IMG/VR virus record: IMGVR_UViG_3300044712_001255
Location: 248,001-312,000 of that record
DNA length: 64,000 nt
Direction: 5' to 3' (one strand)
The position numbers and the translations under genes are program-made. Shown one piece after another: positions 4,303-26,428 of this stretch. The notes under the pieces were generated by a model. It saw only the letters and a list, made by a program, of their open reading frames with translations, ran no database searches and was not told the DNA's origin. The stretch's first letter is position 1. The number at the start of each line of letters is the position of its first letter.

Positions 4303-4638
4303 ATGGCTCGATGGTTGTTGTGGCTTGATGATCAAGCCAATGATATTGACACACCTAATCGCCACCCACCACAAGGATACACAGCGGCGACGTCATCTCA
4401 TGATGCCATTGCGTTAGTGTTGGCGAAGGGCACACCAGAATTCATGGATCTTGACCATGATTTGGGCATGTTAAATGATGGTACTGTCGATGACGCCTTG
4501 CGTTTCTTGACTTGGTTACAAGAACACGCGCCAGAACCTATTCGTTATCGTGTTCACTCGCAGAATCCAATAGGCGCTCAACGCATTCACGCTTTTATGA
4601 AATCGTGGCGACGTTGGTGGCTGTCACAAATCTCATAA
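4303..4638 (+). CDS. receiver-like protein (cyclic-phosphate-processing receiver family)
   Basis: LWLDD, FMDLDHDLG, VHSQNPIGA motifs. Confidence 0.6.
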   Translation: MARWLLWLDDQANDIDTPNRHPPQGYTAATSSHDAIALVLAKGTPEFMDLDHDLGMLNDGTVDDALRFLTWLQEHAPEPIRYRVHSQNPIGAQRIHAFMKSWRRWWLSQIS

Positions 4639-7815: not shown

Positions 7816-8164
7816 ACAAGATTTCGTTCCAGGCAACGTCATAGTACAACGTATCATGACACGCGTTGTGAAGCATGTCAACAAAAAAGGCAAGCAAAGT
7901 GCTTTGTTTGATATCGACAAACGCGAAAAAATTGAATATGAATACGTTGAAGATGCACGCTTCATGATCATTTCGTGTGTCAAGCAATTCACGCGTCGTC
8001 ACAACAAACACAAGGTCAACACTGGCAGGTGGGAAGTATTTCTAATGCCGCTTGGATGCAAGACTACAGCACCCGTCAAAATGTCATTTTTGTATGGGCG
8101 TCGTAGCGACTCAGCTGTGAATTATGATTATCAACGCCTGAACATTTACGCTTCAAAGAGGTAA
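7790..8164 (+). CDS. hypothetical protein
   Basis: ORF track; true start uncertain. Confidence 0.45.
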   Translation: MMRQVVLREQDFVPGNVIVQRIMTRVVKHVNKKGKQSALFDIDKREKIEYEYVEDARFMIISCVKQFTRRHNKHKVNTGRWEVFLMPLGCKTTAPVKMSFLYGRRSDSAVNYDYQRLNIYASKR

Positions 8165-8174
8165 ATTCCATCTC

Positions 8175-8393
8175 ATGGAAGATGAAGCGCAACGCAAGAA
8201 GGCGTTAGATGACTTTTTAAGTGTGTTCTCTCAGCAACAACGTGAATTTAAGTTCACTGCGCATGACACAAATGAGACGTTTCGGCCGCCGTTAGCAGGC
8301 GATGGCAATGAATGGCAATTTCAGGCATTTCAGGCATCACCTAAAACAACTGGCGTGGGATATGTGCTGTGGTCTAGAATTCGAAAGCCATGA
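8175..8393 (+). CDS. hypothetical protein
   Basis: 72-aa ORF, ATGA overlap with HNH gene. Confidence 0.45.
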   Translation: MEDEAQRKKALDDFLSVFSQQQREFKFTAHDTNETFRPPLAGDGNEWQFQAFQASPKTTGVGYVLWSRIRKP

Positions 8394-8758
8394 GCAAGAA
8401 AAAGGAGAAACGTGTTCCACGTCCTCGAGGTCGTACGTTGGAACAACTTGCAATTCGAATTGCGCAAACTGATAAAACATTCGACGCATTGCCCGATGGG
8501 TGGAGCGGAAAGTGTATTTTTTGTGGTGGCAGAGTGTTTGTGTCATCATCAGGTAAGACGAACGCTACCATAGAACACATAGTACCAGTTTCTGCGGGTG
8601 GGACAAATGATGAACTCAATGTTGCATTAGCTCATAGCTCTTGCAACTCAGAAAAGGGCGTTCGACACGATCCCAACTACCCAAAAGACCCTCGATCTGT
8701 AGAAGTTGTCAATAACCTGCTCCAAAGACGCCAGGAGAGGTTTCGATCTGATATTTAG
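8390..8758 (+). CDS. HNH endonuclease
   Basis: CIFC...TIEHIVPVSAGG..N.ALAHSSCNSEKG. Confidence 0.75.
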   Translation: MSKKKEKRVPRPRGRTLEQLAIRIAQTDKTFDALPDGWSGKCIFCGGRVFVSSSGKTNATIEHIVPVSAGGTNDELNVALAHSSCNSEKGVRHDPNYPKDPRSVEVVNNLLQRRQERFRSDI

Positions 8759-8762
8759 CTGC

Positions 8763-9209
8763 ATGGACAACATTGCGTTGCTGCGGCACATCATTCTCGA
8801 CGAGGCTAAGAAGATTCAAAAGGCGAAGAAAGCCAAGGTGAAGCCTTGGGATGAAGCGCCAACAGGTGAAGGCGAAACCCAAGACATGGGCGATACCAAG
8901 GATGCCAAGGTTGGCGACAAGGCAAAGCAAACTGCTTGGGAAGATGGCAAGCCAAAGGGCAAGCTAAAGGCGACTCGTGCCACCGAGCGTAAACTTACGG
9001 CCGAAGAATTGCGTCGTCTTGTTATTGACGAGGCCAAGAAGGCTAAGGCGGAGAACGCGTCTGTTACGTCAGCCCGCACGCCGTTGGAAGATCCGGATCA
9101 AGTTCCTGAGCTTCCGTGGGAAAAGGGAATGCGTAAGAAGGGCGAGCACAAGCATGCCGTGAAGCAGGAAAGCGTTCTCAAAGGCCTTGCTGATTCGCTA
9201 GAGGAGTGA
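8763..9209 (+). CDS. charged protein with repeated LRxxIxDE motif (putative virion internal protein)
   Basis: LLRHIILDEAKK and ELRRLVIDEAKK; preceded by ATATTTA. Confidence 0.55.
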   Translation: MDNIALLRHIILDEAKKIQKAKKAKVKPWDEAPTGEGETQDMGDTKDAKVGDKAKQTAWEDGKPKGKLKATRATERKLTAEELRRLVIDEAKKAKAENASVTSARTPLEDPDQVPELPWEKGMRKKGEHKHAVKQESVLKGLADSLEE

Positions 9210-9592
9210 TGCAAATCACCCTTGGACAATTAAGAACCATCGTGCGGCGCACGTTGTCCGAGCGCCGCCGTGGACACCGTAGACATCACTCACATTCATC
9301 GCATGGTCATGGTGGATTTGGCCCGGGTGATATCTTCAGCTGGGGATTGTTCGGTGGGTCAAAGGATTACGGTGGTTCTGAACCTGGGAGTTATTCCGGG
9401 GGCGGCTCGTGGGACATGTACGGCGGCTACGGAGACTATGGATATGGAGCGTATGCTTCTGGACACCATTATCACGACCCGCGCACAGACCCTGACGTTC
9501 CGGAGTTCATGAGGCCCTCTGGTGGAGTCACGGCAAGTACACATTCAGATGATTTTATGGATTTTGATGATGATTCTGACGGATTTGACTGA
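9206..9592 (+). CDS. Gly/His/Tyr-rich low-complexity protein with ITLGQLR motif
   Basis: MQITLGQLRTIVRRTLSE then His-rich, GYGDYGYG and acidic tail. Confidence 0.55.
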   Translation: MMQITLGQLRTIVRRTLSERRRGHRRHHSHSSHGHGGFGPGDIFSWGLFGGSKDYGGSEPGSYSGGGSWDMYGGYGDYGYGAYASGHHYHDPRTDPDVPEFMRPSGGVTASTHSDDFMDFDDDSDGFD

Positions 9593-9693
9593 GTGTAAAG
9601 GGTCAAGCGAGGCTATATACTAGAATCAACGCAACAGAAAATGCCACAGCGGTGGAAAATAGTTGTGTACAAGTGAAAGATTAATGATACTGT
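9593..9693 (+). promoter_or_regulatory. tandem promoters upstream of first RNA cluster
   Basis: GTGTAA(9593)-17-TATACT(9616) and GTGTAC(9665)-17-TACTGT(9688). Confidence 0.65.
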
Positions 9694-9742
9694 ATGATTA
9701 CCGAGGCGTTCATACCGCTCGGTCCTACAAATAGGAAATCCA

Positions 9743-9856
9743 ATGAAGACTGCAATCGCAAATATCGCAAAACAATATCGCCAACCAGAATGGCGTATTG
9801 AGGCGAATTATGCGATTCGCAATGCCAATCAGGAGAAGGATAAGATCCCGAGCTAG
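9743..9856 (+). CDS. putative leader peptide (37 aa)
   Basis: AGGAAA SD; MKTAIANIAKQYRQPEWRIEANYAIRNANQEKDKIPS*. Confidence 0.6.
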   Translation: MKTAIANIAKQYRQPEWRIEANYAIRNANQEKDKIPS

Positions 9857-9884
9857 CGTAGTTGAATAAATAAAGTTCAATGCG

Positions 9885-9920
9885 TCGGCTCGGAAGAAGA
9901 TTCCGGGCCGATTGTGTTTT
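9885..9920 (+). terminator. intrinsic terminator / attenuator hairpin before tRNA cluster
   Basis: 11-bp stem TCGGCTCGGAA/TTCCGGGCCGA, loop GAAGA, then TTGTGTTTT. Confidence 0.7.
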
Positions 9921-9925
9921 AGAAT

Positions 9926-10009
9926 GGTGCGTTGCCCGAATGGTTCAAGGGGCGAGGCTGTAGTCCTCGCGGTTAAGACCGATTGGTGGTTCGAATCCAT
10001 CACGCATCA
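9926..10009 (+). tRNA. tRNA-Tyr(GTA)
   Basis: Cloverleaf, CGAGG-CTGTAGT-CCTCG, long variable arm. Confidence 0.9.
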
Positions 10010-10055
10010 CCGGAACTAACGAGTTCTGATGTTCTCTGAAAACTGATCGTTGTAT

Positions 10056-10141
10056 GGATGTGTTGAGCAGGTGGTGAGCTCAGCTGACTGTAAATCAGCC
10101 GCCCGTAACGGGTTTGTCAGGTTCGATTCCTACCGCATCCA
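10056..10141 (+). tRNA. tRNA-Tyr(GTA)
   Basis: GCTGA-CTGTAAA-TCAGC, long variable arm. Confidence 0.9.
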
Positions 10142-10148
10142 CTCATAT

Positions 10149-10231
10149 TCTCGGGTCGGGAAATTGGTATCCCAAGAGATTGTTAATCTCTCGCACGTAA
10201 GTGTATGTAGGTTCGAGCCCTACTCCGAGAG
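10149..10231 (+). tRNA. tRNA-Asn(GTT) with long variable arm
   Basis: AGAGA-TTGTTAA-TCTCT, G73, variable region CGCACGTAAGTGTAT. Confidence 0.85.
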
Positions 10232-10232
10232 C

Positions 10233-10320
10233 GAACTCATAATGCAAGTGCCTGCGTGGAGCAGGAATACTGCAAGTGAAAGGAAGATTAACATACCAAG
10301 TAACACCAAACAGTGGGTTC
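10233..10320 (+). ncRNA. structured RNA with internal GTGAA...AGTAAC helix
   Basis: Closing GAACTC/GGGTTC, hairpin CCTGC/GCAGG, GTGAA 10276 and AGTAAC 10299. Confidence 0.45.
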
Positions 10321-10324
10321 ACAT

Positions 10325-10397
10325 TGCGTAGTAGGCAAATTGGTAAGCCGTGGAGTTGTTACCTCCTTGATTGCGGGTTCGAATCCTGCCTGCGCAG
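10325..10397 (+). tRNA. tRNA-Asn(GTT)
   Basis: TGGAG-TTGTTAC-CTCCT, G73. Confidence 0.85.
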
Positions 10398-10399
10398 CG

Positions 10400-10582
10400 C
10401 CGGATAGTGGTGGGTTCCACTGCGTAAGTGAATGAAGTAACTATGCTAATGCGACGCTTGGGTTCGAGTCCCAACAGGTAACAAATGGGCATAATGGTAA
10501 CGGTTACTGGTTACGCAAAACAAGTTGACTACGAGGGCAAATGTTAGCGTAATCTACTGGGTTCGATTCCCGATAGTCCGCA
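10400..10582 (+). ncRNA. structured RNA with two T-arm-like hairpins
   Basis: GGTTCGAGTCC and GGTTCGATTCC hairpins, GTAAC-TATGC/GCATA-GTTAC and TTACGC/GCGTAA helices; no cloverleaf. Confidence 0.45.
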
Positions 10583-10595
10583 AATCACAATGAAT

Positions 10596-10666
10596 GCCTC
10601 ACTAACATAATGGTAGTGTAACTGGTTCTTACCCAGCTAGTCTCAGTTCGATTCTGGGGTGTGGCA
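10596..10666 (+). tRNA. tRNA-Lys(CTT)
   Basis: ACTGG-TTCTTAC-CCAGC. Confidence 0.85.
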
Positions 10667-10667
10667 C

Positions 10668-10738
10668 TGCGGCGTAGTTCAATGGTAAAACAGCTCGCTC
10701 TGACCGAGTATCTGTAGGTTCAACTCCTACCGCCGCAA
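10668..10738 (+). tRNA. tRNA-Gln(CTG)
   Basis: GCTCG-CTCTGAC-CGAGT. Confidence 0.9.
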
Positions 10739-10741
10739 CGA

Positions 10742-10916
10742 GCCGACAATTCCAGTTTCGAGTACTGGACGCACTTGATAACATTGGCGCTTGAAAGGGC
10801 CCATTCACATTGTCTCGAGCACCAGTGTGATGGGCAGCAAGTACGTAAAACGCCTCACGACATCGTAGAAATAGCAATGAAAACAAAGTGTGTAATGCAA
10901 GTGGTAGCATATCGGC
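10742..10916 (+). ncRNA. circularly permuted tRNA-like RNA, copy 1
   Basis: 3' half 10742-10777 (GCCGA, T arm, CGCACTT-G) precedes 5' half 10886-10916 (AAGTGTG, D arm ATGC/GCAT, TCGGC); all four stems pair. Confidence 0.75.
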
Positions 10917-10924
10917 GTGTTTTT

Positions 10925-10995
10925 TGGAGCATCATCTAATGGCAGGATAGTAGCCTTTGAAGCTATGAATAGGGGTTCGAGTCCCTTTGCTCCAA
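10925..10995 (+). tRNA. tRNA-Gln(TTG)
   Basis: GTAGC-CTTTGAA-GCTAT. Confidence 0.9.
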
Positions 10996-10998
10996 CAA

Positions 10999-11151
10999 GC
11001 CCGAGACCTGGGTTCGAGTCCCAGTTGGACGGTGGCGCTTGAGAGCAAGTCAACGTGCTGATCACACGGAGACATCGCTAGTACGTAAGTCGCCGGCAAT
11101 TGGCTGATCACCTTTTGTCTTGTCCAGTAGTTTAGCGGTCAGAACACGGGC
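10999..11151 (+). ncRNA. circularly permuted tRNA-like RNA, copy 2 (Asp-like scaffold)
   Basis: 3' half 10999-11032 (GCCCG, T arm, TTGGACG-G) precedes 5' half 11121-11151 (TGTCCAG, D arm GTTT/GAAC, CGGGC). Confidence 0.8.
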
Positions 11152-11164
11152 AGTCCTTTCACAT

Positions 11165-11237
11165 GCACTAGTAACTCAATCGGTAGAGTAGACGGCCTTT
11201 AACCGTAAAGTTGAGAGTTCGAGCCTCTCCTGGTGCA
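11165..11237 (+). tRNA. tRNA-Lys(TTT), C33 variant
   Basis: Loop CCTTTAA. Confidence 0.8.
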
Positions 11238-11252
11238 CTTCAACAACGATTT

Positions 11253-11324
11253 GCTTCTGTACGCATCGGGTGAGGCGGGTGGATTGTCAATCCATTGAGG
11301 CGGGTTCGAGTCCCGTCAGAAGCG
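11253..11324 (+). tRNA. tRNA-Asp(GTC)
   Basis: GTGGA-TTGTCAA-TCCAT, G73. Confidence 0.9.
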
Positions 11325-11330
11325 CAATAC

Positions 11331-11403
11331 GTCCCTATAGCTCAACGGATAGAGCGCTTGGCTACGAACCAAGAGGTTGTAAGTTCGAATCTTGCTAGGG
11401 ACG
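11331..11403 (+). tRNA. tRNA-Arg(ACG)
   Basis: CTTGG-CTACGAA-CCAAG. Confidence 0.92.
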
Positions 11404-11404
11404 C

Positions 11405-11478
11405 TGCGGGTTAGAGAAGAGGCCCATCTCACTTGGCTCATAACCAAGAGACCGCCGGTTCGAATCCGGCATCCGCTA
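11405..11478 (+). tRNA. tRNA-Met(CAT), initiator-like
   Basis: CTCATAA loop, 1:72 mismatch; only two G-C pairs at base of anticodon stem. Confidence 0.8.
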
Positions 11479-11479
11479 C

Positions 11480-11554
11480 GACGCTGTAGCTCAAATGCAA
11501 GAGCAGCTGCAATTAAGCAGCAAGATGTTGGTTAAAATCCAGCTGGCGTCACCA
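11480..11554 (+). ncRNA. tRNA-shaped RNA with 6-nt non-canonical anticodon loop and encoded CCA
   Basis: Intact acceptor, D and T stems; GCTGC-AATTAA-GCAGC; ends ACCA. Confidence 0.65.
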
Positions 11555-11555
11555 T

Positions 11556-11631
11556 GGCCTTGTCGTCTATGAATGTAGGACGCCACCCCTTAGTCGAGGT
11601 GGAAAAACAGGTGCGAATACTGTCGAGGCCG
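11556..11631 (+). ncRNA. Glu-like tRNA scaffold with 10-nt anticodon loop
   Basis: GGCCTTG/CGAGGCC acceptor; CCACC-CCTTAGTCGA-GGTGG; degenerate T loop. Confidence 0.55.
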
Positions 11632-11637
11632 CAAATT

Positions 11638-11710
11638 GATTCTGTCGTCTATGAGTAAGACAATCCCAAATTGGTGGGAATAAAAGCTGATTCGTTGTCA
11701 GCCTGGATCA
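11638..11710 (+). ncRNA. tRNA-shaped RNA with non-canonical anticodon loop
   Basis: GTCT/AGAC D stem; TCCCA-AATTGG-TGGGA; GCTGA/TCAGC T stem. Confidence 0.55.
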
Positions 11711-11711
11711 C

Positions 11712-11785
11712 TGGCACATGATGTAGTGGTTTCTGCATGCTGGTCTGATAAATCAGTCGTACGAGTCCGATTCTCGTTGTGCCTA
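11712..11785 (+). tRNA. tRNA-Ile(GAT)
   Basis: CTGGT-CTGATAA-ATCAG; slightly atypical T loop. Confidence 0.75.
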
Positions 11786-11786
11786 C

Positions 11787-11858
11787 GGCCTTGTCGTCTA
11801 TCGGTAGGACAATTGGTTCTCAGCTAATAAAGGACGGGTTCGACTCCCTCCAAGGCTA
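11787..11858 (+). tRNA. tRNA-Glu(CTC)
   Basis: ATTGG-TTCTCAG-CTAAT. Confidence 0.85.
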
Positions 11859-11860
11859 CA

Positions 11861-11967
11861 CTCTTTTGCATTGTGGTCGTGTCTCGACGGGGACCAGCGA
11901 TAGGTTCAAATCCTATCATAAAATTTGGTAGCTGAGCGTTGGTTCGAATCCAACGGGTGTAAAAGAG
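11861..11967 (+). ncRNA. closed RNA with two tandem T arms
   Basis: 10-bp closing stem CTCTTTTGCA/TGTAAAAGAG; ATAGG-TTCAAAT-CCTAT and GTTGG-TTCGAAT-CCAAC. Confidence 0.6.
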
Positions 11968-11973
11968 ATTTTT

Positions 11974-12047
11974 GGTCCCATCTTCTAAATGGTCAGGATA
12001 CTAGACTTTCAATCTGGTAATGGCGAGTTCAAGTCTCCCTGGGATCA
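11974..12047 (+). tRNA. tRNA-Glu(TTC)
   Basis: CTAGA-CTTTCAA-TCTGG. Confidence 0.9.
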
Positions 12048-12133
12048 CCTCGAGTTTCCTTCATGAACTTTGTCGTGCCTGCGTGCGTGGAAAGCGACTA
12101 GATCACCTGGTGACAATCGGGAAAGACCGATAA

Positions 12134-12207
12134 CGGGGTGTACCTCAGTCTGGTAGAGGGCTTGTTTTGGGTACAAGACGTCGCACGTTCGATTCGTGTC
12201 ACCCCGA
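12134..12207 (+). tRNA. tRNA-Pro(TGG)
   Basis: CTTGT-TTTGGGT-ACAAG, C1-G72, A73. Confidence 0.9.
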
Positions 12208-12221
12208 CAACGAAAGATTAC

Positions 12222-12293
12222 ATGCCACTGGTGTTAATGGTAACATGTGGGTTTCCAAGTCCCGTGATGCGCGTTCGATTCGTGCGTGGCATG
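12222..12293 (+). tRNA. tRNA-Trp(CCA) (Gly TCC register less consistent)
   Basis: TGGGT-TTCCAAG-TCCCG, G73. Confidence 0.65.
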
Positions 12294-12360
12294 CTAAACA
12301 AAAATGTGTGATACAAGCTCACACATTAGGAATACAACATACAAACGCAAGGAAAAAGTC

Positions 12361-12876
12361 ATGAATATCAGCCAAGCTCTTCGTCGTATCTCAGTCATTA
12401 AGGGTCAGCTCGCAACCACAGCAACACGTTTCGCCAGTTCAGTCACGTGGATTGATGACGCAAAGCCAACATATTCGCTTGCTGAGTGCGATGTTGCGTG
12501 GGCTCGTCTCGTAGGTGAGCAGACGTCGCTTGAGGCCGCAGTGGCAATTGCCAATGCAACGAACAAGATCACCTATCGTGGTCAGGAATTCACGCTTGCG
12601 TTTGCCGTGAAGCAGTTGGCTGTTTTCAAGGCAAAGATTGCGCTCTTGCGAACCCTGAATTGTCAGGCGACTGCAGAACGCACCGATGTTACTCGTGATA
12701 CTGAGTACGTAAATGGAAATTACGTAACTGTCACTCGAGAGAAGAAGGTTCACTGTGCATTCACTGAGCGTGAGCGTGATACGAGTGTTCAGGTAGCGCA
12801 GACAGACTTTGACGAGCTCAACGCACTCGTCGAGGCGGCAAATCACACCATTCAGGTCGACCCTCAGGTCGTCTGA
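12361..12876 (+). CDS. helical/coiled-coil protein, DIP1984-like
   Basis: MNISQALRRISVIKGQL...IANATN...ELNALVEAAN resembles DIP1984-family pattern (recalled, not searched). Confidence 0.55.
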   Translation: MNISQALRRISVIKGQLATTATRFASSVTWIDDAKPTYSLAECDVAWARLVGEQTSLEAAVAIANATNKITYRGQEFTLAFAVKQLAVFKAKIALLRTLNCQATAERTDVTRDTEYVNGNYVTVTREKKVHCAFTERERDTSVQVAQTDFDELNALVEAANHTIQVDPQVV

Positions 12877-12883
12877 TGTGAGA

Positions 12884-13081
12884 TGCGCCGAAAGGGAAGT
12901 TGCTGTTGAAACCCTGTTGATTTAAAATCAACTCAACCCTAATAAGGAATGAAAGCTATTGGTATCGGTTCTGGCATCGCATTCAGCACTCAGCGTCCAG
13001 CATCTTTTCCTATCAGCTCATAGCCCTTAGCAGGTAGATTTCAGCAATCAGCAGTCAATTACAACACGCTTCCCTTGCGTT
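12884..13081 (+). ncRNA. structured RNA with 7-nt-period YAGC repeats
   Basis: Closing AAGGGAAGT/GCTTCCCTT; YAGC at 12984,12991,12998,13014,13021,13028,13042,13049. Confidence 0.6.
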
Positions 13082-13085
13082 GTAT

Positions 13086-13157
13086 GCGGTGATAGTTTAG
13101 TGACAAAACGGCAGGCAACCAAAGCCTGAGATCATGGGTTTGATTCCCACATCCGCG
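13086..13157 (+). pseudogene. degenerate Trp-like tRNA (loop AACCAAA)
   Basis: CAGGC/GCCTG stem, no U33, mismatched acceptor. Confidence 0.45.
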
Positions 13158-13269
13158 CTAAGTAACGAGAAAAATTATCGGGTGAAATACCCATATGCCT
13201 GATTGCGTAAGAAGGGTCGACACTTCTGCGATGGAGGTACAACGCCAGAGGAGCGTTAACGTGAAAGTT
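13157..13269 (+). ncRNA. AGUA/GAA-helix RNA
   Basis: AGTA-ACG (13161) ... CGT-GAA (13261), internal hairpins. Confidence 0.5.
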
Positions 13270-13270
13270 T

Positions 13271-13341
13271 GGGGCTTTCGTATAGCGGGATTACGCTGGC
13301 TTTGCAAGCCAGTCACACGGGTTCGAGTCCCGTAGGCTCCA
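13271..13341 (+). tRNA. tRNA-Ala(TGC)
   Basis: CTGGC-TTTGCAA-GCCAG, G3:U70. Confidence 0.92.
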
Positions 13342-13374
13342 CAAATCAACAATGACTGCGTTCAAAGTTGATCA

Positions 13375-13500
13375 ATTACGAGTAACTATTAAGCGGTGTA
13401 AATCCGCATTGTATGCAACGTCATCGACAGTTCGCCTCGATCGGGGTGACTGCCCTCTGCACGTTGACGTACTGGCCGGTGAGCCTAATGTGAAAGTAGT
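13375..13500 (+). ncRNA. AGUA/GAA-helix RNA
   Basis: ATTAC-G-AGTA-AC ... GT-GAA-A-GTAGT; GCGG-TGTAAAT-CCGC hairpin. Confidence 0.55.
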
Positions 13501-13505
13501 GTCAT

Positions 13506-13577
13506 GGGCCTGTAGTTTAATAGGGAAAATTCCTGCCTCGCACGCAGAAAACTCGGGTTCGAATCCCGATGGGTCCA
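13506..13577 (+). tRNA. tRNA-Ala(CGC)
   Basis: CCTGC-CTCGCAC-GCAGA, G3:U70. Confidence 0.88.
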
Positions 13578-13589
13578 CACAATCAACGA

Positions 13590-14630
13590 TCAGTTTGATA
13601 AGAGGTGCCTAAGAACGTCATTGTATGATTCAACCTTGACGTTTGACAATGCATTAAAGATTTCATCTTGCGTTGCCTTGTCTTTCACGTTCTGCTTGAT
13701 CCAATCAATCACTTGGTCCTTATTTACGCCGCCTTGCGTTTGTGATTGTGTACGTGAGCTGCTGTTGGTTTGTTGATTAGGTTGCTGTTCAGTAGACTCT
13801 TCATTAGACCGTTGTGATACTTGCGTATCAAAATTTTGGATCTCTTTGCCCACAGCTTGCATTTTTTCGATCATCGCTGCTAATTTGCCGCTTTTCACTA
13901 TTTGCGCAATTTCTCTTGCTATATTTGCATCAACGTTCATGCCAGCTTGCTTACCAGCTGACATTACAATTGATTGCAACGTATTACTTCCGTGTTGATC
14001 GCCTCGTGGCAATTCACTGCCGCCTGGTACCTTACCAGCATCTAGCGATGTTGCCTGCTTTGTTGGCCTTTGTGCTGTGATTTGTGGTTGTGGTTTTGGC
14101 TTTGGCGTCGCAGGTACAGGTTTCTTTCCAAACTTTGCATTTGCAAGTTCTTCATCTGATTGCACGCCACGTTCTTGTTCGTCTACTGCTTCCATTAGAC
14201 GACGAAACTTTGTGTGAAATGACTCATTGATTTCAGCAGCATCAACTTTTTGTGCAACAAGCTCGTAAAAATGCATACATTTCATGAACTCTTTTTCAAG
14301 AAGCTTGAAATCGCCGTCCTCGTCGTCAAAAATGTCCTTGGAAATACGACCTAAAAATCCTTTTATCTTATCAATGGTGCTTTTCTTATTAACTTGCTTG
14401 TACTTTGCGAATTTCCCTTTTATGTTATCAAGCGTTGTTGCAAGTTGATTTGCGATCGTTATTTGATCATTAGCTTTTAGTACGTCCACTGTTTGCTTCA
14501 CATTTTTGAAAAGCGCTTTGAATTTTGCAAATAACTCTTTATCGATTGCTTCATTCAATTGCTGACGAATGTTCTCATCGATCTTCAAAAGCTTTCGACG
14601 TTGCGCAAGCGTAAGTTTGCTGGTAGACAT
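13590..14630 (-). CDS. charged protein with Gln-rich linker (putative virion internal protein)
   Basis: IRQQLNEA and FRRLMEA motifs; ATAGTTA 10 nt upstream. Confidence 0.6.
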   Translation of the reverse strand: MSTSKLTLAQRRKLLKIDENIRQQLNEAIDKELFAKFKALFKNVKQTVDVLKANDQITIANQLATTLDNIKGKFAKYKQVNKKSTIDKIKGFLGRISKDIFDDEDGDFKLLEKEFMKCMHFYELVAQKVDAAEINESFHTKFRRLMEAVDEQERGVQSDEELANAKFGKKPVPATPKPKPQPQITAQRPTKQATSLDAGKVPGGSELPRGDQHGSNTLQSIVMSAGKQAGMNVDANIAREIAQIVKSGKLAAMIEKMQAVGKEIQNFDTQVSQRSNEESTEQQPNQQTNSSSRTQSQTQGGVNKDQVIDWIKQNVKDKATQDEIFNALSNVKVESYNDVLRHLLSN

Positions 14631-19538: not shown

Positions 19539-21179
19539 ATGGCTAAGAAGACTGCTAAGAATGTTGCTCCGGTTCAGATGTCTGAGGCTGACGCAGCGAA
19601 ACTGCGTGAGGCTGCGGCTCGATTCGATCTCAACGTTCACATCATCAATTTCCTCAGCTCTAACGCATTCTATGCTGAGATCTCTCGTCGAGTTCACAAG
19701 ATCAGCACGAAGGACATTCCCACCGCTGCTGTGGCTTGGAACCAGAAGCTCGACAACATCGTGTTGTACTACAACCCGGAATTCATGTGCCAGCACACCC
19801 CAAAGCAGGTGATTGGCATTCTGAAGCACGAATTCAGTCACTTGTTCTACGGACACTTGAACGCTCGTCGGAAGACTCCACACCGTATGTGGAACATCGC
19901 TACCGATCTTGCAATCAATTCGCTGATTGTTTCGAGCGAGCAGAATTCTGCTTCATATTCTAACATCAACAATCCTCAGGCTGTTTTGCCGGAATGCGCA
20001 TTGATTCCCGGCCACCCGGTTTTCTTTGCAGATCTCAAGCGGCCCTTGACGGCTGATGAGAAGGCTGCGCAGCCCATCGCTGCTCTTATCGAGAAGATGA
20101 AGCCGTTGCTCGCTTCTGAGGATTATTTCCAGCAGCTGATGAAGGTCGCAAAGGAACAGCAGAACACTTGCCCGATGTGTGGCGGTTCTGGCAAGATCAA
20201 GGTGAAGTCTGACGCGGGTGGAGATGAGAATAGCTCAGACGGGCGGGACGGCGTCGAGAAGGAAGGCCAGGACAAGGGCGAAAATGACAAGGGTAATGGG
20301 TCATCTCGCGGAGATGATTCTCACGACGAGGGATGCGAGGGCGATGGAAATTGTTCTTGTGGCCACGGCGATAACGAGCCCGGTGGTTGTAGTGGTCCTG
20401 ATGGTGAATATGATTGCCCTTGCTGCAAGGGCGATGGTGAGCTCGGTGACGGCATTGGTTCGATGGACGATCATGGATTTTGGGATGACATCCCGGAAGA
20501 TATGCGTGAATACGTCGAAAATCGTGTGCGTAACGTGATTGAGCGCGCTGTTGAATCCGCCGATCAGAGCTCGAATGGCTGGGGCTATATGCCTGCTTCG
20601 ATTCGTGAGGAGATTCGTCGGTTCGTATCCAAGAAGGTGCCGTGGCGCTCTGTACTCCGGCAGTTCATTGGAGTGCTTCTGCCAGGCGATCGTTCTACCA
20701 GCATCAAGCGCATCAATCGTCGCTATCCGTATATCCATCCCGGTGTGAAGCGTGGTCGCAAGGCTAAGCTTCTCGTCGCAATCGATATGTCTGGTTCTGT
20801 TGGAGAGGAACTTCTCGCAACGTTCTTTGCGGAACTAACCAACTTGGCAAAGAATTGTGAGATCGATGTTGTCCCGTTCGATTGCTCTGCTGAACCTGAA
20901 CATATCGTCAAGTGGCGACGTGGTGGTCCCCCTCCGATGGGTCGGGTGAAGGCCGGTGGTACCAGCTTTGATGCTCCCACTGACCTTGCCAATGATCCTA
21001 AGAACCGCGGTCGTTGGGATGGTCTGCTAATCGTCACAGACGGGATTTGCAACGCTCCCAAGGAAAGTCGGGTACGTCGCGGATGGGTTCTTGGTCCTGG
21101 GTGCAAGCTGCAATTCGACTCGAACGAGCTCCAGGTCTTCGTAGACAATGAGCGACCGATGGTCGGAGCGTGGAGGTGA
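19539..21179 (+). CDS. metallopeptidase-like plus vWA domain protein (DUF2201-type)
   Basis: HEFSH, NIATDLAIN, vWA DMSGS...GGT...IVTDG; promoter GTGCAG(19476)-17-TAGAGT. Confidence 0.8.
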   Translation: MAKKTAKNVAPVQMSEADAAKLREAAARFDLNVHIINFLSSNAFYAEISRRVHKISTKDIPTAAVAWNQKLDNIVLYYNPEFMCQHTPKQVIGILKHEFSHLFYGHLNARRKTPHRMWNIATDLAINSLIVSSEQNSASYSNINNPQAVLPECALIPGHPVFFADLKRPLTADEKAAQPIAALIEKMKPLLASEDYFQQLMKVAKEQQNTCPMCGGSGKIKVKSDAGGDENSSDGRDGVEKEGQDKGENDKGNGSSRGDDSHDEGCEGDGNCSCGHGDNEPGGCSGPDGEYDCPCCKGDGELGDGIGSMDDHGFWDDIPEDMREYVENRVRNVIERAVESADQSSNGWGYMPASIREEIRRFVSKKVPWRSVLRQFIGVLLPGDRSTSIKRINRRYPYIHPGVKRGRKAKLLVAIDMSGSVGEELLATFFAELTNLAKNCEIDVVPFDCSAEPEHIVKWRRGGPPPMGRVKAGGTSFDAPTDLANDPKNRGRWDGLLIVTDGICNAPKESRVRRGWVLGPGCKLQFDSNELQVFVDNERPMVGAWR

Positions 21180-23371: not shown

Positions 23372-23400
23372 GTGTACTTGTGTGCGAGACATGATAACCT
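23372..23400 (+). promoter_or_regulatory. putative promoter GTGTAC-17-TAACCT for second RNA cluster
   Basis: Recurrent motif. Confidence 0.6.
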
Positions 23401-23406
23401 ATACTC

Positions 23407-23540
23407 AAGGTGCTGCGGCATCTACTTCAGGATGGTAAACATGCTACGCCAACTCAACACGATACAGAGAACACATACCGGCTTGATGCTGGTGTGCGGC
23501 CTGTCGTGTTTAGGTTTGCCATCCAGCGTCGGCCTCCTTA
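23407..23540 (+). ncRNA. rod-shaped structured RNA (6S-like?)
   Basis: GGATGGTAAAC/GTTTGCCATCC, AACACGA-CAG/CTG-TCGTGTT, CACATACCGGC/GCTGGTGTG nested helices. Confidence 0.35.
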
Positions 23541-23600
23541 CCCCCTCAGGGGTAAGATTTAGTTGCTGACATAGGCCCCTCGTCCTGGGCTAGAAGTTTT

Positions 23601-23670
23601 CAAAGCGTAGCTCAAAGAGAGCGGCTGATCGTGGAGATCAGTGATGCAGAATCGGTACCTGCCGCTTTGA
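23601..23670 (+). ncRNA. tRNA-shaped RNA with non-canonical anticodon and T arms
   Basis: CAAAGCG/CGCTTTG-A, GCTC/GAGC D stem, GCTGATC-GTGGA-GATCAGT. Confidence 0.5.
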
Positions 23671-23722
23671 CGGATCGAAAGAAAGTTGTTTCGATCTTGT
23701 TCATTGACAATCTGCATTCTTT

Positions 23723-23793
23723 CAGCCTATGGCGTAGTGGTAACGCTCCAGTTCGGGGAACTGGCATCATTGGTTCGATTCCGATTAGGCTGA
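23723..23793 (+). tRNA. tRNA-Pro(GGG), C33 variant
   Basis: CCAGT-TCGGGGA-ACTGG, C1-G72, A73. Confidence 0.75.
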
Positions 23794-23869
23794 CTGGGAA
23801 TACGTCATTTTCCTAGTGCAGGGACGCCTGTTGAGTGAGAGTGACGTAGACCATACACTAGAAAAATGA

Positions 23870-24466
23870 TTGATAGAATTGATCGATATGAAGAAATGTG
23901 ATGCATCTCTTGAAGAGATTCAAAGATTCGTAAAAGAATCAACATGTATTTCGCAAGTTGTCATTGCGCTCAAATTACCGTGTAATGCGAAGTACGCAGA
24001 ATTTGTTCGTCAATTGATCTCACAACACGCACTTGACACATCTCACTTCACACGCAAACGAAAATATGAACGAATCAGAAAAGCTTGTCCTGTTTGTCAA
24101 ACAACGTTTGAAACATACGTAAATCATCCTAAATACAACAAAACAACGTGTTCGTGTGCTTGCGCAAATTCATTCTTTCGTAGTGGAAATAACAACCCAA
24201 ACACAAAGCATGACGAAGATAAGGGAACGTGGATGTACACGTTATGTTGGAAAAATCATGAACATCAATGCGTCATTTGTGGTGAACAAAACATCGTAGC
24301 TGTTCACCATTTTAATGGTAAACATGATGACAATCGACCAGAGAATTTGGTACCTATGTGTCCAACACATCATCAATATTGGCACTCTAAATTTCGATCA
24401 CTCATAGAGGAAAAAGTAAACACATATGTAGAAAATTGGATCTCAACACATCAGAGATTAGTGTAG
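23870..24466 (+). CDS. HNH endonuclease
   Basis: CPVC, CSCAC, CVIC..AVHH.N..H.DN..NLVPMCPTHH; stop lies inside downstream tRNA. Confidence 0.7.
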   Translation: MIELIDMKKCDASLEEIQRFVKESTCISQVVIALKLPCNAKYAEFVRQLISQHALDTSHFTRKRKYERIRKACPVCQTTFETYVNHPKYNKTTCSCACANSFFRSGNNNPNTKHDEDKGTWMYTLCWKNHEHQCVICGEQNIVAVHHFNGKHDDNRPENLVPMCPTHHQYWHSKFRSLIEEKVNTYVENWISTHQRLV

Positions 24467-24522
24467 TGGTTGCACACCTGCCTTGGGGACAGGTTGTCGG
24501 AGTTCGATTCTCCGATCTCTGA
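24452..24522 (+). tRNA. tRNA-Pro(TGG)
   Basis: Loop CTTGGGG, C1-G72, A73. Confidence 0.85.
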
Positions 24523-24523
24523 C

Positions 24524-24770
24524 GCACACGTGGTGGAAAGGCAGACACAACATTAAAAGCGTAAGGTGCTTGTTGGCGTTGATTCGCCAGCATCAAGCAT
24601 GGATCGAGGGAGCGTAACGCGGTGCGGAAAACGGCCAACGGGTACGACAATCGTGAAGTGTGCAGCAGGTTTGCGGATGCACCGGAACGGCGCTCGAGGG
24701 TGTCGTAAGGGAAGCGAGCTTATCCTAAAAGCTGCAGATGTGGATGCGGGTTCGAGTCCCGCCGTGCGCA
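24524..24770 (+). ncRNA. tRNA scaffold with 182-nt structured insert replacing the anticodon loop
   Basis: Leu-type D arm GTG-GAAAGGCAGA-CAC, ACATT/GATGT stem, T arm GCGGG-TTCGAGT-CCCGC, A73. Confidence 0.7.
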
Positions 24771-24773
24771 AAT

Positions 24774-24844
24774 CAGGGACAGGTGTAATGGTTGCACCTC
24801 TGTTTCGGGAACAGATAGTCGGAGTTCGATTCTCCGGTCCTTGA
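24774..24844 (+). tRNA. tRNA-Pro(CGG)
   Basis: TCTGT-TTCGGGA-ACAGA. Confidence 0.88.
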
Positions 24845-24956
24845 CAACATCATAACACGACCAAATGGTGCCGGCAAAACCCCCGGAGTGCAAAATGTAG
24901 CTGTGGCAGGCGAATTGACGCCAAGGCGATAACATAGCAACGTGCGATGATGAAAT

Positions 24957-25028
24957 ACCGGGATAGCTCAGTGGTAGAGCGTCTCCCTTACAAGGAGAGT
25001 GTCGCAGGTTCGAGCCCTGTTCCCGGTA
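24957..25028 (+). tRNA. tRNA-Val(TAC)
   Basis: TCTCC-CTTACAA-GGAGA. Confidence 0.92.
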
Positions 25029-25029
25029 C

Positions 25030-25102
25030 GAGCGTCTGGTGTAGATGGTTCGCACAATACCCTGAAGACGTATGGGACTCGGTTCGATCCCGAGGGCGCT
25101 CG
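25030..25102 (+). tRNA. tRNA-Phe(GAA)
   Basis: Loop CTGAAGA. Confidence 0.8.
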
Positions 25103-25105
25103 CAA

Positions 25106-25179
25106 TCCCAAGTTGGTTAAGACGGATGAACGCGTGCCTGAAGAGCACGAGAGGGTGGTTCGATTCCACTGCTTGGGAC
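25106..25179 (+). tRNA. tRNA-Phe(GAA)
   Basis: CGTGC-CTGAAGA-GCACG; atypical D arm. Confidence 0.7.
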
Positions 25180-25206
25180 AATACGAGCAAGATATGTATG
25201 TTTGCT

Positions 25207-25812
25207 ATGTCTGGAGAGAAGAACGGCGTACGTATCAATTCATTAGCAGACGTTGAGGGACCATCGTCCTCCAACTGGCCGGCAAAGATACGCGCTAGTT
25301 CAGGAGAAAAGCTCAAAAATTGGGCCGCAGTGCTGATGGGCGTCGCGGCGCTTGTGACCGCTGGTGGCACATATATCAAGCCCGCGGATGACACAAAAAC
25401 ACGATCGACTTATGAAGAGATTCGACGCGAGATAGGCGAAATGTCGAAAGACATTAAGAATGTGTCGCAGGACGTTGAGTTCTTATACCAGGTGCGTATC
25501 TCTGATGAGAAACAACGACATGACGCGTTTGACAAAGAAGCAAAGATGCAGGAAGAGGAAGATTCATACATAGAGCAATTCCTTGCAAAGAAAAACGGAT
25601 CAAAAGCCGCGAAGGACTACATTGACAAGCGCAAGCTTGAACGTAAAAAGTTGCGTGTGTTGTTCAAGGTAAGTTCAGACAAACGTGAACTCGCACGCCC
25701 ACCGACTACGAGAAATCTTCCGTCGTATGACGCAGTTCCACAAACTTCGGCGAGTGCAGGCGCACCAAATACCAATGATGGTGGGTCAAGCAGGCCGAGT
25801 GTAAACAAGTAA
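25207..25812 (+). CDS. membrane-anchored coiled-coil protein
   Basis: TM WAAVLMGVAALVTAGG then helical region; start re-assigned downstream of tRNAs. Confidence 0.55.
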   Translation: MSGEKNGVRINSLADVEGPSSSNWPAKIRASSGEKLKNWAAVLMGVAALVTAGGTYIKPADDTKTRSTYEEIRREIGEMSKDIKNVSQDVEFLYQVRISDEKQRHDAFDKEAKMQEEEDSYIEQFLAKKNGSKAAKDYIDKRKLERKKLRVLFKVSSDKRELARPPTTRNLPSYDAVPQTSASAGAPNTNDGGSSRPSVNK

Positions 25813-25884
25813 CGCCAAGTGGTAGAACGATAATACATCCGGTTGCAACCCGGAAGATTGCAGGTTTAAGTCCTGTCTTGGCGT
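25813..25884 (+). tRNA. tRNA-Cys(GCA)
   Basis: TCCGG-TTGCAAC-CCGGA, U73. Confidence 0.85.
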
Positions 25885-25886
25885 CA

Positions 25887-26043
25887 GATCAAGTAACCAG
25901 ATCTTTTGATCCGATGTTGATAACGTAAGTCAACTTTTTGGCGGAACTGGCAGACGCGCCGGCCTAAGAAACTGGCATGATCATTTGAACAAAATTCTTG
26001 TGATCTATGTGGGTTCAAGTCCCACAAGAGAAGGTGAACGATC
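25887..26043 (+). ncRNA. tRNA mimic on AGUA/GAA helix, unit 1 (Leu AAG-like core)
   Basis: GATC-A-AGTA-ACC ... GGT-GAA-C-GATC enclosing D arm, loop CTAAGAA, long variable arm, T arm. Confidence 0.7.
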
Positions 26044-26047
26044 ATTT

Positions 26048-26119
26048 GCTGGAGTGGTGATAGTGGTAGCACAGTTGCTTGGTAAGCAACCTGCAGGGGT
26101 TCGATTCCCCTCCCCAGCA
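26048..26119 (+). tRNA. tRNA-Thr(GGT)
   Basis: GTTGC-TTGGTAA-GCAAC. Confidence 0.9.
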
Positions 26120-26121
26120 CA

Positions 26122-26212
26122 GAGCGCGGTAACTACGTTCGTTGTCATGGTTTGACAAGGAATTCTTTCAAAAATTCCTATTTTGGTTCGAATCCAAATA
26201 GGTGAAGCGCTC
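26122..26212 (+). ncRNA. tRNA mimic on GGUA/GAA helix, unit 2 (Glu-like core)
   Basis: GAGCGC-GGTA-ACT ... GGT-GAA-GCGCTC; D, anticodon-like (8-nt loop) and T arms. Confidence 0.7.
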
Positions 26213-26219
26213 AATCTTC

Positions 26220-26318
26220 AAACAAAAGTAACCTCACAAACGAAGTGTTGATAGTGACACAACTTGAGTTTAACAAGAAAAAGTAGGTGCAAGTCCTGCC
26301 GTGAAGGTGAAATTGTTT
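26220..26318 (+). ncRNA. tRNA mimic on AGUA/GAA helix, unit 3
   Basis: AAACAA-A-AGTA-ACC ... GGT-GAA-A-TTGTTT; loop AGTTTAA; T arm GTAGG/CCTGC. Confidence 0.7.
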
Positions 26319-26324
26319 CTTTTT

Positions 26325-26421
26325 CAACAAAGTAACTGTTTTCGTGTTGATTGATAATCATCTTAGCTTAAAACTAAGACAATCTGGTGAGACTCCAGAC
26401 TCGAGTTTAGGTGAAATGTTG
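26325..26421 (+). ncRNA. tRNA mimic on AGUA/GAA helix, unit 4
   Basis: CAACA-A-AGTA-ACT ... GGT-GAA-A-TGTTG; CTTAG-CTTAAAA-CTAAG; T arm TCTGG/CCAGA. Confidence 0.7.
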
Positions 26422-26428
26422 TACAAAC

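Follow-up and report, generated by a model that had tools for sequence, protein, structure and literature searches.

Architecture of the leader region

The region analyzed precedes the first of two tRNA arrays in an uncultured jumbo phage with a genome of 324,468 bp. Coordinates refer to the window, the whole 64,000-nucleotide stretch of this genome that was examined (IMG/VR record IMGVR_UViG_3300044712_001255, positions 248,001 to 312,000), and all features lie on the plus strand. A promoter-like motif (9655-9698) is followed by a leader ORF (9743-9856), a terminator-like hairpin (9884-9912), and tRNA array 1 (9926-13578). The array encodes two tRNAs each for Tyr, Asn, Lys, Gln, Glu, and Ala, one each for Asp, Arg, Met, Ile, Leu, Pro, and Trp, one odd tRNA, and a protein gene at 12361-12876. 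There is no room for a promoter between the hairpin and tRNA-Tyr, so the array would depend on read-through. TAGAAT at 9921-9926 was considered as a promoter for tRNA-Tyr, but was rejected because the start site would fall inside the tRNA.

The promoter-like motif consists of an A-tract, (T)TGTGTACA, 13-14 nt, and TGATACTGTATGAT; its core (GTGTACA, 13-14 nt, TGATACTGTAT) spans 9665-9695 and the transcript start is inferred to be at about 9698-9701. The pattern GTGTA-N14-18-TGATA-N3-TAT occurs only twice in the 324-kb genome, at window positions 9665 and 23372, each time ahead of a tRNA array. The original prediction described tandem promoters, but a sigma-70 scan found no site scoring 9/12 or better in 9600-9742. 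A second, upstream element (9593-9626; GTGTAAA, 14 nt, TATATACTAGAAT), right after the stop of the preceding gene, is tentative. It has no sigma-70 hit and is supported only by a perfectly conserved 13-nt island (CATATACTAGAAT) in a stretch otherwise 71% identical to the close relative described below.

The predicted leader RNA begins with a 5'-terminal hairpin (9700-9723). A Shine-Dalgarno-like AGGA (9733-9736) lies 6 nt before the ATG and partly within a weak 5-bp hairpin (9723-9736). The ORF comprises 37 codons plus TAG (9854-9856), and codons 4-27 form a long imperfect hairpin (9751-9822) that could act as a pause or timing hairpin, although this role is inferred. The 226-nt leader folds with z = -4.55. 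In the terminator-like hairpin, 9885-9895 pairs with 9901-9911 to give 11 bp, including one U.G at 9890/9906, or 12 bp with G9884.U9912, around the loop GAAGA. The U-rich tail TTGTGTTTT (9912-9920) ends 5 nt before tRNA-Tyr. A terminator scan of 8000-14500 listed this hairpin, with a predicted stability of -19 to -20.5 kcal/mol, first, and a genome-wide scan ranked it as the most stable terminator-like hairpin of the phage, at -20.5 kcal/mol.

CCGAGC (9848-9853), the Pro36-Ser37 codon pair, is the exact complement of GCTCGG (9888-9893) in the 5' arm of this hairpin. The observation made in the original prediction, comprising the ORF with its Shine-Dalgarno, the hairpin with its U-tract, and this complementarity, is confirmed to the base. 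The alternative pairing extends beyond the 6 bp first noted. It is a three-part helix formed by 9848-9854/9887-9893, 9856-9860/9880-9884, and 9862-9867/9875-9880. Its 5' strand (9848-9860; CCGAGCU, A, GCGUA) spans the last two codons, the stop codon, and 4 nt beyond, an A/U-rich apical hairpin (9862-9880) stacks inside it, and its 3' strand (9880-9893) overlaps the 5' arm of the terminator. As a result, the two helices are mutually exclusive.

Conservation in related phages

Two relatives retain this layout. The close relative, L086, was found by exact look-up of the leader peptide, and the distant relative, L088, by a search with the 19-nt core of the hairpin. The leader of L086 is 95.6% identical to that of the window and the ORF 98.2%, whereas third codon positions of a neighboring gene are 54% identical and spacers 34-49%. 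None of the 10 differences breaks a major helix. C9847T lengthens the outer antiterminator helix to 9 bp, and the differences at 9860-61, 9871, and 9874-75 keep the helix (U.G to U-A, A-U to G.U). The promoter-like motif is 97% identical in L086.

L088 is much more divergent, with flanking proteins 38% identical. It nevertheless keeps the key words of the promoter motif, which occurs twice in the relative phage, both times ahead of tRNA arrays. A 5' hairpin is also predicted in both relatives; its central GGCG.TCAT..CGCT is conserved, while the outer stem differs between lineages. L088 has a 32-codon ORF at the same place, with a strong internal hairpin at non-homologous positions, but its Shine-Dalgarno is poor (GGA, 3 nt before the ATG). 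The 19-nt hairpin core, including the loop, is identical and is the longest exact word the two phages share in this region. Across the three sequences, three outer pairs change on both sides and one changes U.G to U-A, although covariation statistics are thin with only two independent lineages. The U-rich tail of L088 is TGCGTTTT, and about 108 nt separate the hairpin from its first tRNA-like gene.

A complement of the 5' arm is also present in L088, as TTCCGAG starting 2 nt after the stop codon. The element lies at -6..+1 from the stop in the window and +2..+10 in L088, in both cases within a ribosome footprint of about 30 nt although its position has shifted. When the leader was folded up to the terminator loop, the 5' arm paired with the stop-codon region in the window, L086, and L088. 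The stabilization was -13.5, -16.7, and -10.7 kcal/mol (P 0.01, <0.003, and 0.037 against 300 dinucleotide shuffles of the upstream sequence). The antiterminator core never varies, so compensation bears neither for nor against this helix. An ORF whose stop covers the element arises in 17-34% of shuffles for the window, depending on the minimum ORF length required, and in 0.7-9% for L088, depending on minimum ORF length and whether the stop is kept.

The peptide itself is not conserved. An exhaustive HMMER search and a word-index search, covering 1.84 billion representatives and 5.8 billion proteins, returned only the peptide itself. BLASTP found no alignment with the L088 peptide, and a shuffle test gave P 0.15. 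Substitutions between the window and L088 ORFs, counted by eye, showed no third-position excess, although the divergence is too high for this to be informative. We therefore rejected the ORF as a conserved small protein gene.

Other searches for relatives returned little. Flanking proteins found nothing in IMG/VR, and the DNA ligase found only distant phages at 48% identity or less with no tRNAs in reach. No cultured phage matches the region, apart from tRNA-Tyr fragments in Streptomyces phages. A profile of the Gly-rich neighbor protein returned only the L088 phage again. The 19-mer matched 11 loci in JGI metagenomes; one is the L088 contig again, and the other ten are matches inside unrelated sequence, two of them the same sequence. 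A loop-free version of the hairpin pattern gave only chance hits, and the core extended to 23 nt (R at the G/A-variable position) is absent from 185,579 prokaryote genomes. Four metagenome runs, all DNA, hold the same phage with no variation in the leader, and no RNA run was found.

Codon content of the leader ORFs

While no single codon occurs in a tandem run, the ORF is written almost only in codons read by the tRNAs that follow. Array-1 tRNAs read 33 of the 36 codons after the ATG, compared with 4 read by array 2 (P<1e-4). The ORF samples about 12 amino acids served by the array, for example Ile, Lys, and Asn; Gly, Val, Phe, His, Cys, and Leu are absent. It ranks first of 1,214 small ORFs in the genome for array-1 codon share, at 0.92 against 0.74 for the next, and the other two frames of the same DNA give 19/36 and 18/36. 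In L088, the figure is 20/31 (P 3e-4). This is a different form of enrichment from the classical one, and the test was conceived after looking at the peptide and is partly confounded by the genetic code, given array 1 serves mostly hydrophilic NAN codons and array 2 mostly hydrophobic or small residues.

The second array is also preceded by a copy of the promoter motif (23372-23406) and a leader ORF (23441-23569). This ORF has 42 codons in both phages, and array-2 tRNAs read 36/41 and 37/41 of its codons (P 4e-4 and <1e-4). However, its RNA architecture differs and no obvious equivalent switch was found.

Proposed mechanism

We propose, with moderate confidence, that the region is a trp-type ribosome-mediated transcription attenuator with negative feedback on tRNA supply. 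In this model, a dedicated promoter starts a leader RNA near 9700. As RNA polymerase moves on, the stop-codon region (9848-9860) would zip onto 9880-9893 around the apical hairpin, sequestering the 5' arm of the terminator and allowing read-through into tRNA-Tyr and the rest of the array. A ribosome that has translated the whole ORF and sits on the last codons or the stop codon would cover the antiterminator 5' strand. The 5' arm would then pair with 9901-9911 and transcription would stop in the U-tract. Given the codon content of the ORF, a ribosome would reach the stop in time only when the array's own tRNAs are sufficient. A shortage of these tRNAs, from whatever cause, would give read-through and more phage tRNA, whereas sufficiency would give termination. 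Lack of peptide conservation is expected if the act of translation matters and the product does not.

The elements, their conservation, the alternative pairing, and the codon match are shown by the sequence and comparisons. In contrast, the transcript start, translation of the ORF, termination at the hairpin, the kinetic competition, the dependence of read-through on ribosome position, and the sign of the regulation are inferred. At equilibrium, the terminator wins in all three sequences, by about 4 kcal/mol in the window and L086 and about 20 in L088, and masking a ribosome footprint barely changes its predicted probability. The model therefore needs kinetic trapping. In addition, no stable partner is predicted for 9848-9860 and there is no clear protector (1:2) helix, so an untranslated leader would read through.

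The interpretation in the original prediction is thus partly supported. The attenuator geometry is real and stronger than first described, and absence of the layout from relatives, which had been named as grounds for refutation, was not observed, as both keep the promoter, leader ORF, antiterminator complement, and terminator. However, the prediction viewed the peptide, not being enriched in one amino acid, as a possible sensor of general translation failure such as host tRNA cleavage. The ORF instead looks tuned to the tRNAs it would gate, and a link to host tRNA cleavage is speculative.

A broader reading, which we put forward tentatively, is that each of the two arrays is headed by its own ‘codon-mirror’ leader ORF: a short, sequence-unconserved frame written almost only in codons that the array behind it decodes. 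By a strict-wobble count, array 1 serves 24 codons and array 2 serves 39. Ribosome progress through the mirror ORF would report whether those particular tRNAs are sufficient and set transcription of the array accordingly. Each block of tRNAs would then have its own homeostat, which would also switch on phage tRNA supply if the host pool were depleted.

How phages control expression of their tRNA genes is largely unknown. No bacterial or phage tRNA operon is known to be governed by a leader-peptide attenuator, and literature searches found none. If the reading is right, the phage measures the very thing its tRNAs are meant to fix, namely the speed of decoding a defined set of codons, and feeds that measurement back onto tRNA transcription. 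This would extend classical attenuation from sensing one amino acid to sampling a whole tRNA set and would explain why tRNAs are sorted into arrays. It would also yield a compact, portable sensor of codon-specific translation capacity, and the codon-mirror index provides a simple computational handle for finding similar leaders in other large phages.

Alternative explanations

The best-surviving alternative, though unlikely, is an ordinary leaky terminator. The promoter would drive a small stand-alone gene or stable leader RNA ending at the hairpin, a fixed fraction of polymerases would read through, and the upstream complement would regulate nothing. This is consistent with the equilibrium folding, with the 5' hairpin, 3' hairpin, and U-tail typical of a stable small RNA, and with the chance frequency of the window's ORF. 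It does not explain why the complement is kept beside the stop codon in a lineage as distant as L088, why the codons match the downstream array, or why the 19-nt core is more conserved than the tRNAs themselves.

It is somewhat less likely that the switch is real but flipped by another factor, such as a phage or host RNA-binding protein or an RNA such as a tRNA, that recognizes the invariant core or loop or the repeated TTCCGAG element. The identity of the core across lineages fits sequence-specific recognition as well as dual pairing, the element occurs as two direct copies plus one inverted copy, and the ribosome-binding site of L088 is weak. However, no Rfam family, T-box included, matches the leader at E<=10 or the wider region at E<=1, no candidate binding protein was identified, and neither the codon match nor the retention of the ORF is explained.

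We consider it doubtful that the hairpin is not a terminator but a processing or stability element that, after RNase P cleavage at 9925/9926, protects the leader or upstream mRNA from 3' exonucleases or helps present the first pre-tRNA. Phage tRNA arrays are heavily processed, the hairpin lies 14 nt upstream of the cleavage site and abuts the first tRNA in the window and L086, and the relative carries an RNase P-like RNA, although none was found in the window's own genome. Adjacency is not conserved in L088, and the conserved U-rich tail and competing helix have no role in this reading. Least likely is a DNA operator for a dimeric repressor acting on this transcription unit: while the perfect 9-bp inverted repeat and its 5-bp spacer are invariant and a third TTCCGAG copy lies 30-40 bp upstream, the site is about 190 bp downstream of the promoter motif, its outer stem changes keep pairing but not sequence, which points to RNA or hairpin selection, the following T-tract is conserved, and it appears nowhere else in the genome as an operator set.

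Comparison with known systems

Phage tRNA clusters such as those of T4 and T5 are discussed as counter-measures to anticodon nucleases (PMC11464382). Array 1 holds Lys, Tyr, Asn, Asp, Gln, Arg, and Glu tRNAs. These are species that anticodon nucleases often target. No report of a translation-sensing leader for those clusters was found in literature searches, and a link to defence is speculation here. The hairpin resembles intrinsic (Rho-independent) terminators in its G+C-rich stem of 11-13 bp, 5-nt loop, and U-rich tail. It differs in lying in front of the genes it precedes with no promoter after it, in having a conserved competing helix, and in a core sequence frozen across distant relatives.

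In pyrBI-type attenuation, translation of a leader ORF also sets termination frequency, but through a closely following ribosome that physically blocks the terminator hairpin. Here, the ORF does not run up to or through the hairpin: the stop codon is 27-28 nt (24 nt in L088) upstream of the stem, a distance at which direct repression of a terminator by the ribosome is nearly gone in E. coli (PMC4824070). The sign of regulation would also be opposite. T-box riboswitches are terminator/antiterminator leaders that report on tRNA status. However, Rfam searches gave no hit other than tRNAs at E<=1 in 8000-37000 and nothing meaningful at E<=10 in 9550-9930, no specifier or T-box bulge is evident, and sensing here would be through the ribosome.

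The closest parallels are the leader-peptide attenuators of proteobacterial amino-acid operons (trp, his, leu, thr, ilv, pheA) and of pheST. In these systems too, a short ORF close to the promoter is followed by an intrinsic terminator, an antiterminator shares a strand with the terminator, and a ribosome at the stop codon would mask the antiterminator strand. The peptide sequence is not conserved and, in the proposed reading, codon content carries the information. The stop-to-U-tract distance (about 66 nt) and helix energies resemble those of the E. coli trp leader, although the lack of a clear protector helix means that an untranslated leader should read through, unlike trp. The phage element further differs in that the gated genes are tRNAs rather than enzymes or a synthetase, in that its ORF samples many amino acids instead of carrying a run of one regulatory codon, and in that it is carried by a phage.

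Genomic context and relatives

The window spans bases 248,001-312,000 of a 324,468-bp IMG/VR virus contig (CheckV completeness 86%) that derives from a rhizosphere metagenome. It carries 45 tRNA genes detected by ARAGORN, all on the + strand, in two main arrays (9926-13578 and 23723-35308); a few additional tRNAs are detected only by Rfam. The phage encodes a sigma-70-family protein as well as T4-like baseplate and RNA-ligase proteins, and no cultured phage is close to it. Its genome (G000) also encodes a tmRNA outside the window (49473-49828, + strand) with the tag ANDNATVLRAAA. Tags of this ANDN... type are typical of Proteobacteria, which may hint at the host. More distant relatives of the protein gene inside array 1 (loci L083 and L084) sit next to tmRNA genes. 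HNH endonuclease genes lie beside and between the tRNA arrays (8390-8758 and 19539-21179, both + strand), and homing endonucleases also occur in the T4 tRNA region. The upstream neighbors of the window and the gene content inside the array differ between relatives, which fits mobile insertions.

The tRNAs are sorted between the arrays. Array 1 (9926-13578) serves mostly codons with A in the second position (Tyr, Asn, Lys, Gln, Asp, Glu) plus Arg(CGN), Met, Ile, Trp, Ala, Pro, and Leu(UUG). Array 2 (23723-35308) serves Pro, Thr, Ser, Gly, Cys, Val, Phe, Leu, His, and Arg(AGR, CGR). The distant relative described below keeps the same partition. A tRNA-like gene at 11480-11551 (+) scores 44.7 bits in Rfam but has an abnormal anticodon loop; ARAGORN calls it only at a relaxed threshold and cannot assign an anticodon. 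Elsewhere in the genome (313007-313079, - strand), there is a tRNA with anticodon TTA, which would read the UAA stop codon.

Searches with flanking proteins returned no relatives, and the other sequencing runs examined hold only the identical phage. Two relatives were found by other routes. L086 is a 3.2-kb contig from another sample that encodes the identical leader peptide. L082, a sequence from the same sample as L086, is syntenic with the window downstream of the array and encodes a homologue of gene 12361-12876 that is 78% identical in protein; we take it to be the same relative phage. L088 is a 190.7-kb IMG/VR contig that was hit by the 19-nt core of the terminator-like hairpin. It is syntenic upstream, though its neighboring proteins are only 38% identical to those of the window.

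Organization of the leader

Every coordinate in the original prediction proved to be right. An ATG at 9743 opens a 37-codon ORF that ends with TAG at 9854-9856, and AGGA is present at 9733-9736. Downstream, a stem pairs 9885-9895 with 9901-9911, forming 11 bp with one U.G, or 12 bp if 9884/9912 is included, around the loop GAAGA. The tail TTGTGTTTT occupies 9912-9920 and tRNA-Tyr starts at 9926. The CCGAGC at 9848-9853 is complementary to the GCTCGG at 9888-9893. The hairpin tops the terminator scan of the neighborhood. In a scan of both strands of the whole genome, it is the most stable terminator-like hairpin, at -20.5 kcal/mol, and only about ten comparable hairpins exist in 324 kb. The 226-nt leader folds far better than shuffles (z = -4.55). 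No promoter can fit between the hairpin and the tRNA, so the array must be transcribed through this hairpin.

The pattern GTGTA-N14-18-TGATA-N3-TAT occurs exactly twice in the genome, at 9665 and 23372, and each copy lies just upstream of one tRNA array. The relative phage also has the motif exactly twice, again ahead of its two arrays. This makes a dedicated promoter for the arrays likely and places the inferred transcript start near 9700, at the foot of the 5' hairpin, although a generic sigma-70 scan finds nothing here. The original prediction had proposed tandem promoters; the second of these is supported only by a 13-nt conserved island at 9614-9626.

Conservation in the close and distant relatives

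In the close relative L086, the leader is 95.6% identical and the ORF 98.2%. By contrast, the stretch just upstream is 71% identical, inter-tRNA spacers are 34-49% identical, and the protein gene is 74.6% identical, with third codon positions at 54%. The leader is therefore as constrained as the tRNA genes, and its synonymous sites are far more conserved than protein coding alone would require. Of the ten differences, two are synonymous changes (Pro15, Ile35) and none breaks a major predicted helix. The change 9906 G>A turns the U.G of the stem into U-A, a change at 9875 does the same in the apical hairpin, and 9860 A>G keeps a pair as G.U. The change 9847 C>T lengthens the outer helix of the antiterminator from 7 to 9 bp. 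Compared with L082, non-coding stretches between the tRNA-Ala genes and after gene 12361-12876 (12880-13270 and 13343-13505) also have long blocks that are nearly identical. This conservation is much higher than at third codon positions of the neighboring gene, so these stretches may hold further stable RNAs.

The distant relative L088 keeps the promoter-like words (TGTGTACA, 14 nt, TGATACTGTAT), a 5' hairpin with a conserved center, an ATG in the same CAATGA context, a 32-codon ORF, TTCCGAG beginning 2 nt after its stop codon, and the hairpin, with an identical 19-nt core and a TGCGTTTT tail. This core is the longest exact word shared between 37 kb of the window and the L088 locus, and is longer than anything in the tRNAs. 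The three outer stem pairs differ on both sides yet still pair. Overall, the stem has 13 pairs, of which 3 are compensatory, 1 is one-sided, and 8 are invariant, and it forms 94.9% standard pairs against 15-51% when the partner strand is slid. L088 has a weak ribosome-binding site, however, and a 108-nt gap before its first tRNA-like gene. This phage also carries a 207-nt match to bacterial RNase P RNA class A (10596-10802, + strand; 118.5 bits, gathering score 100) at the end of its first tRNA array, which may be a miniature phage-encoded RNase P RNA. No such match is found in the genome of the window.

Predicted alternative folds of the leader RNA

To represent the nascent RNA before the 3' arm exists, we folded each leader up to the terminator loop. 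In all three sequences, the 5' arm pairs with the stop-codon region. In the window, this is a composite helix consisting of 9848-9854/9887-9893, 9856-9860/9880-9884, and 9862-9867/9875-9880; in L086, the helix is even part of the minimum-free-energy fold of the longest transcript tested. The stabilization is -13.5, -16.7, and -10.7 kcal/mol in the window, L086, and L088, and is reached by 1%, 0%, and 3.7% of 300 dinucleotide shuffles of the upstream sequence. The comparison rests on only two independent lineages, and the antiterminator core is frozen, so it offers no covariation test. At equilibrium, once the 3' arm is present, the terminator is favored (by about 4, 4, and 20 kcal/mol), and masking a ribosome footprint changes little. 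The switch, if real, is therefore kinetic, as is trp attenuation. The stop codon lies 27-28 nt (24 nt in L088) before the stem. In E. coli, direct repression of a terminator by a terminating ribosome has nearly vanished at about 30 nt (PMC4824070). The ribosome would therefore act through the antiterminator rather than on the terminator itself. No protector helix is evident in the leader.

Codon content of the leader ORFs

As to whether the ORF is translated, the peptide has no homologue in the databases searched, and the peptides of the two lineages are not significantly similar. An ORF whose stop lets a ribosome cover the antiterminator strand arises in 17-34% of shuffles for the window and 0.7-9% for L088, which is suggestive only. 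The stronger evidence is codon content. Under strict wobble rules, the tRNAs of array 1 read 24 codons. They read 33 of the 36 leader codons after the ATG, compared to a shuffle average of 20.9 (P<1e-4), and array 2 reads only 4 of them. At the amino-acid level, the share is 35/37, with P 3e-4 against shuffles and 4e-4 against 37-residue windows of the phage's own long ORFs. Among all 1,214 ATG ORFs of 30-60 codons in six frames of the genome, this ORF ranks first for array-1 share, at 0.92 with the runner-up at 0.74, while the other two frames of the same DNA give 19/36 and 18/36. The L088 leader ORF gives 20/31 (P 3e-4), and its Lys, Gln, and Glu codons lean to the G-ending forms, the only ones its C34 tRNAs read.

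The second array has its own leader ORF, at 23441-23569 in the window and 4308-4436 of sequence L100 in the relative. Both are exactly 42 codons, and they share only about 20% identity in a gapless count made by eye. Their codons mirror array 2, with 36/41 and 37/41 readable (P 4e-4 and <1e-4), and none of 68,496 proteome windows reaches the amino-acid share of the second-leader peptide of the window (37/41). These tests were devised after seeing the first peptide and are partly entangled with the genetic code, because array 1 serves mainly hydrophilic NAN codons. We count them as two independent observations rather than four. Even so, they are hard to ascribe to chance.

The second leader (23372-23722 in the window, L100 4237-4570) has the same promoter motif as the first. 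It is a 300-nt, highly structured RNA (z -4.5 and -3.2) with a hairpin at 23537-23556 inside the ORF, a stop codon embedded in a block conserved with the relative (GCTGACATAGGCCCC...GGGCTAGAA), a tRNA-like remnant, and a final hairpin at about 23672-23699. Its ORF runs through a hairpin, its RNA architecture differs from that of the first leader, and we could not recognize an equivalent switch in it. The motif TTGTTC(A/C)TTGACAA, preceded by a short A/T-rich hairpin, lies 15-20 nt before the first tRNA of three of the four arrays (window 23690-23722, L088 7488-7514, L100 4540-4570) and is absent from array 1 of the window. It is too close to the tRNA to be a sigma-70 promoter for it, so it may be a processing or binding signal.

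Proposed mechanism and alternatives

Taken together, the best reading is a ribosome-mediated attenuator. By default, or when the ribosome lags or stalls on any of the first 30 or so codons, the antiterminator would form and the array would be transcribed. When the ribosome reaches the last codons or the stop in step with the polymerase, it would cover 9848-9860, the terminator would form, and transcription would end 5 nt before tRNA-Tyr. Because the ORF samples the array's own codons, this would be negative feedback on the supply of those tRNAs. The elements, their conservation, the competing pairing, and the codon match are shown by the sequence and the comparisons; in contrast, the transcript start, translation of the ORF, termination at the hairpin, and the dependence of read-through on ribosome position are inferred from sequence alone. 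The original prediction was accurate as an observation. Its interpretation is supported in part: the idea that the leader senses tRNA loss remains possible but speculative, and the data refine its "general translation failure" to decoding capacity for the codons that this array serves.

Other explanations can be considered. The leader may end in a constitutive leaky terminator of a small RNA or gene or, less probably, may contain a switch flipped by a protein or RNA that reads the invariant core. A hairpin for 3'-end protection or processing is a weaker possibility. None of these accounts for the codon match. A DNA operator is the least likely alternative and likewise leaves the codon match unexplained.

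Comparison with known systems

Literature searches found no attenuator described for phage or bacterial tRNA gene clusters, although the literature searched was incomplete and this is absence of evidence only. The element is not a T-box, as indicated by the Rfam searches, and is not a pyrBI-type device. As proposed here, it would work like the leader-peptide attenuators of trp, his, leu, thr, ilv, pheA, and pheST. It meets their structural criteria except for the tandem regulatory codons and the protector helix, and differs from these systems in that the genes it would control are tRNAs.
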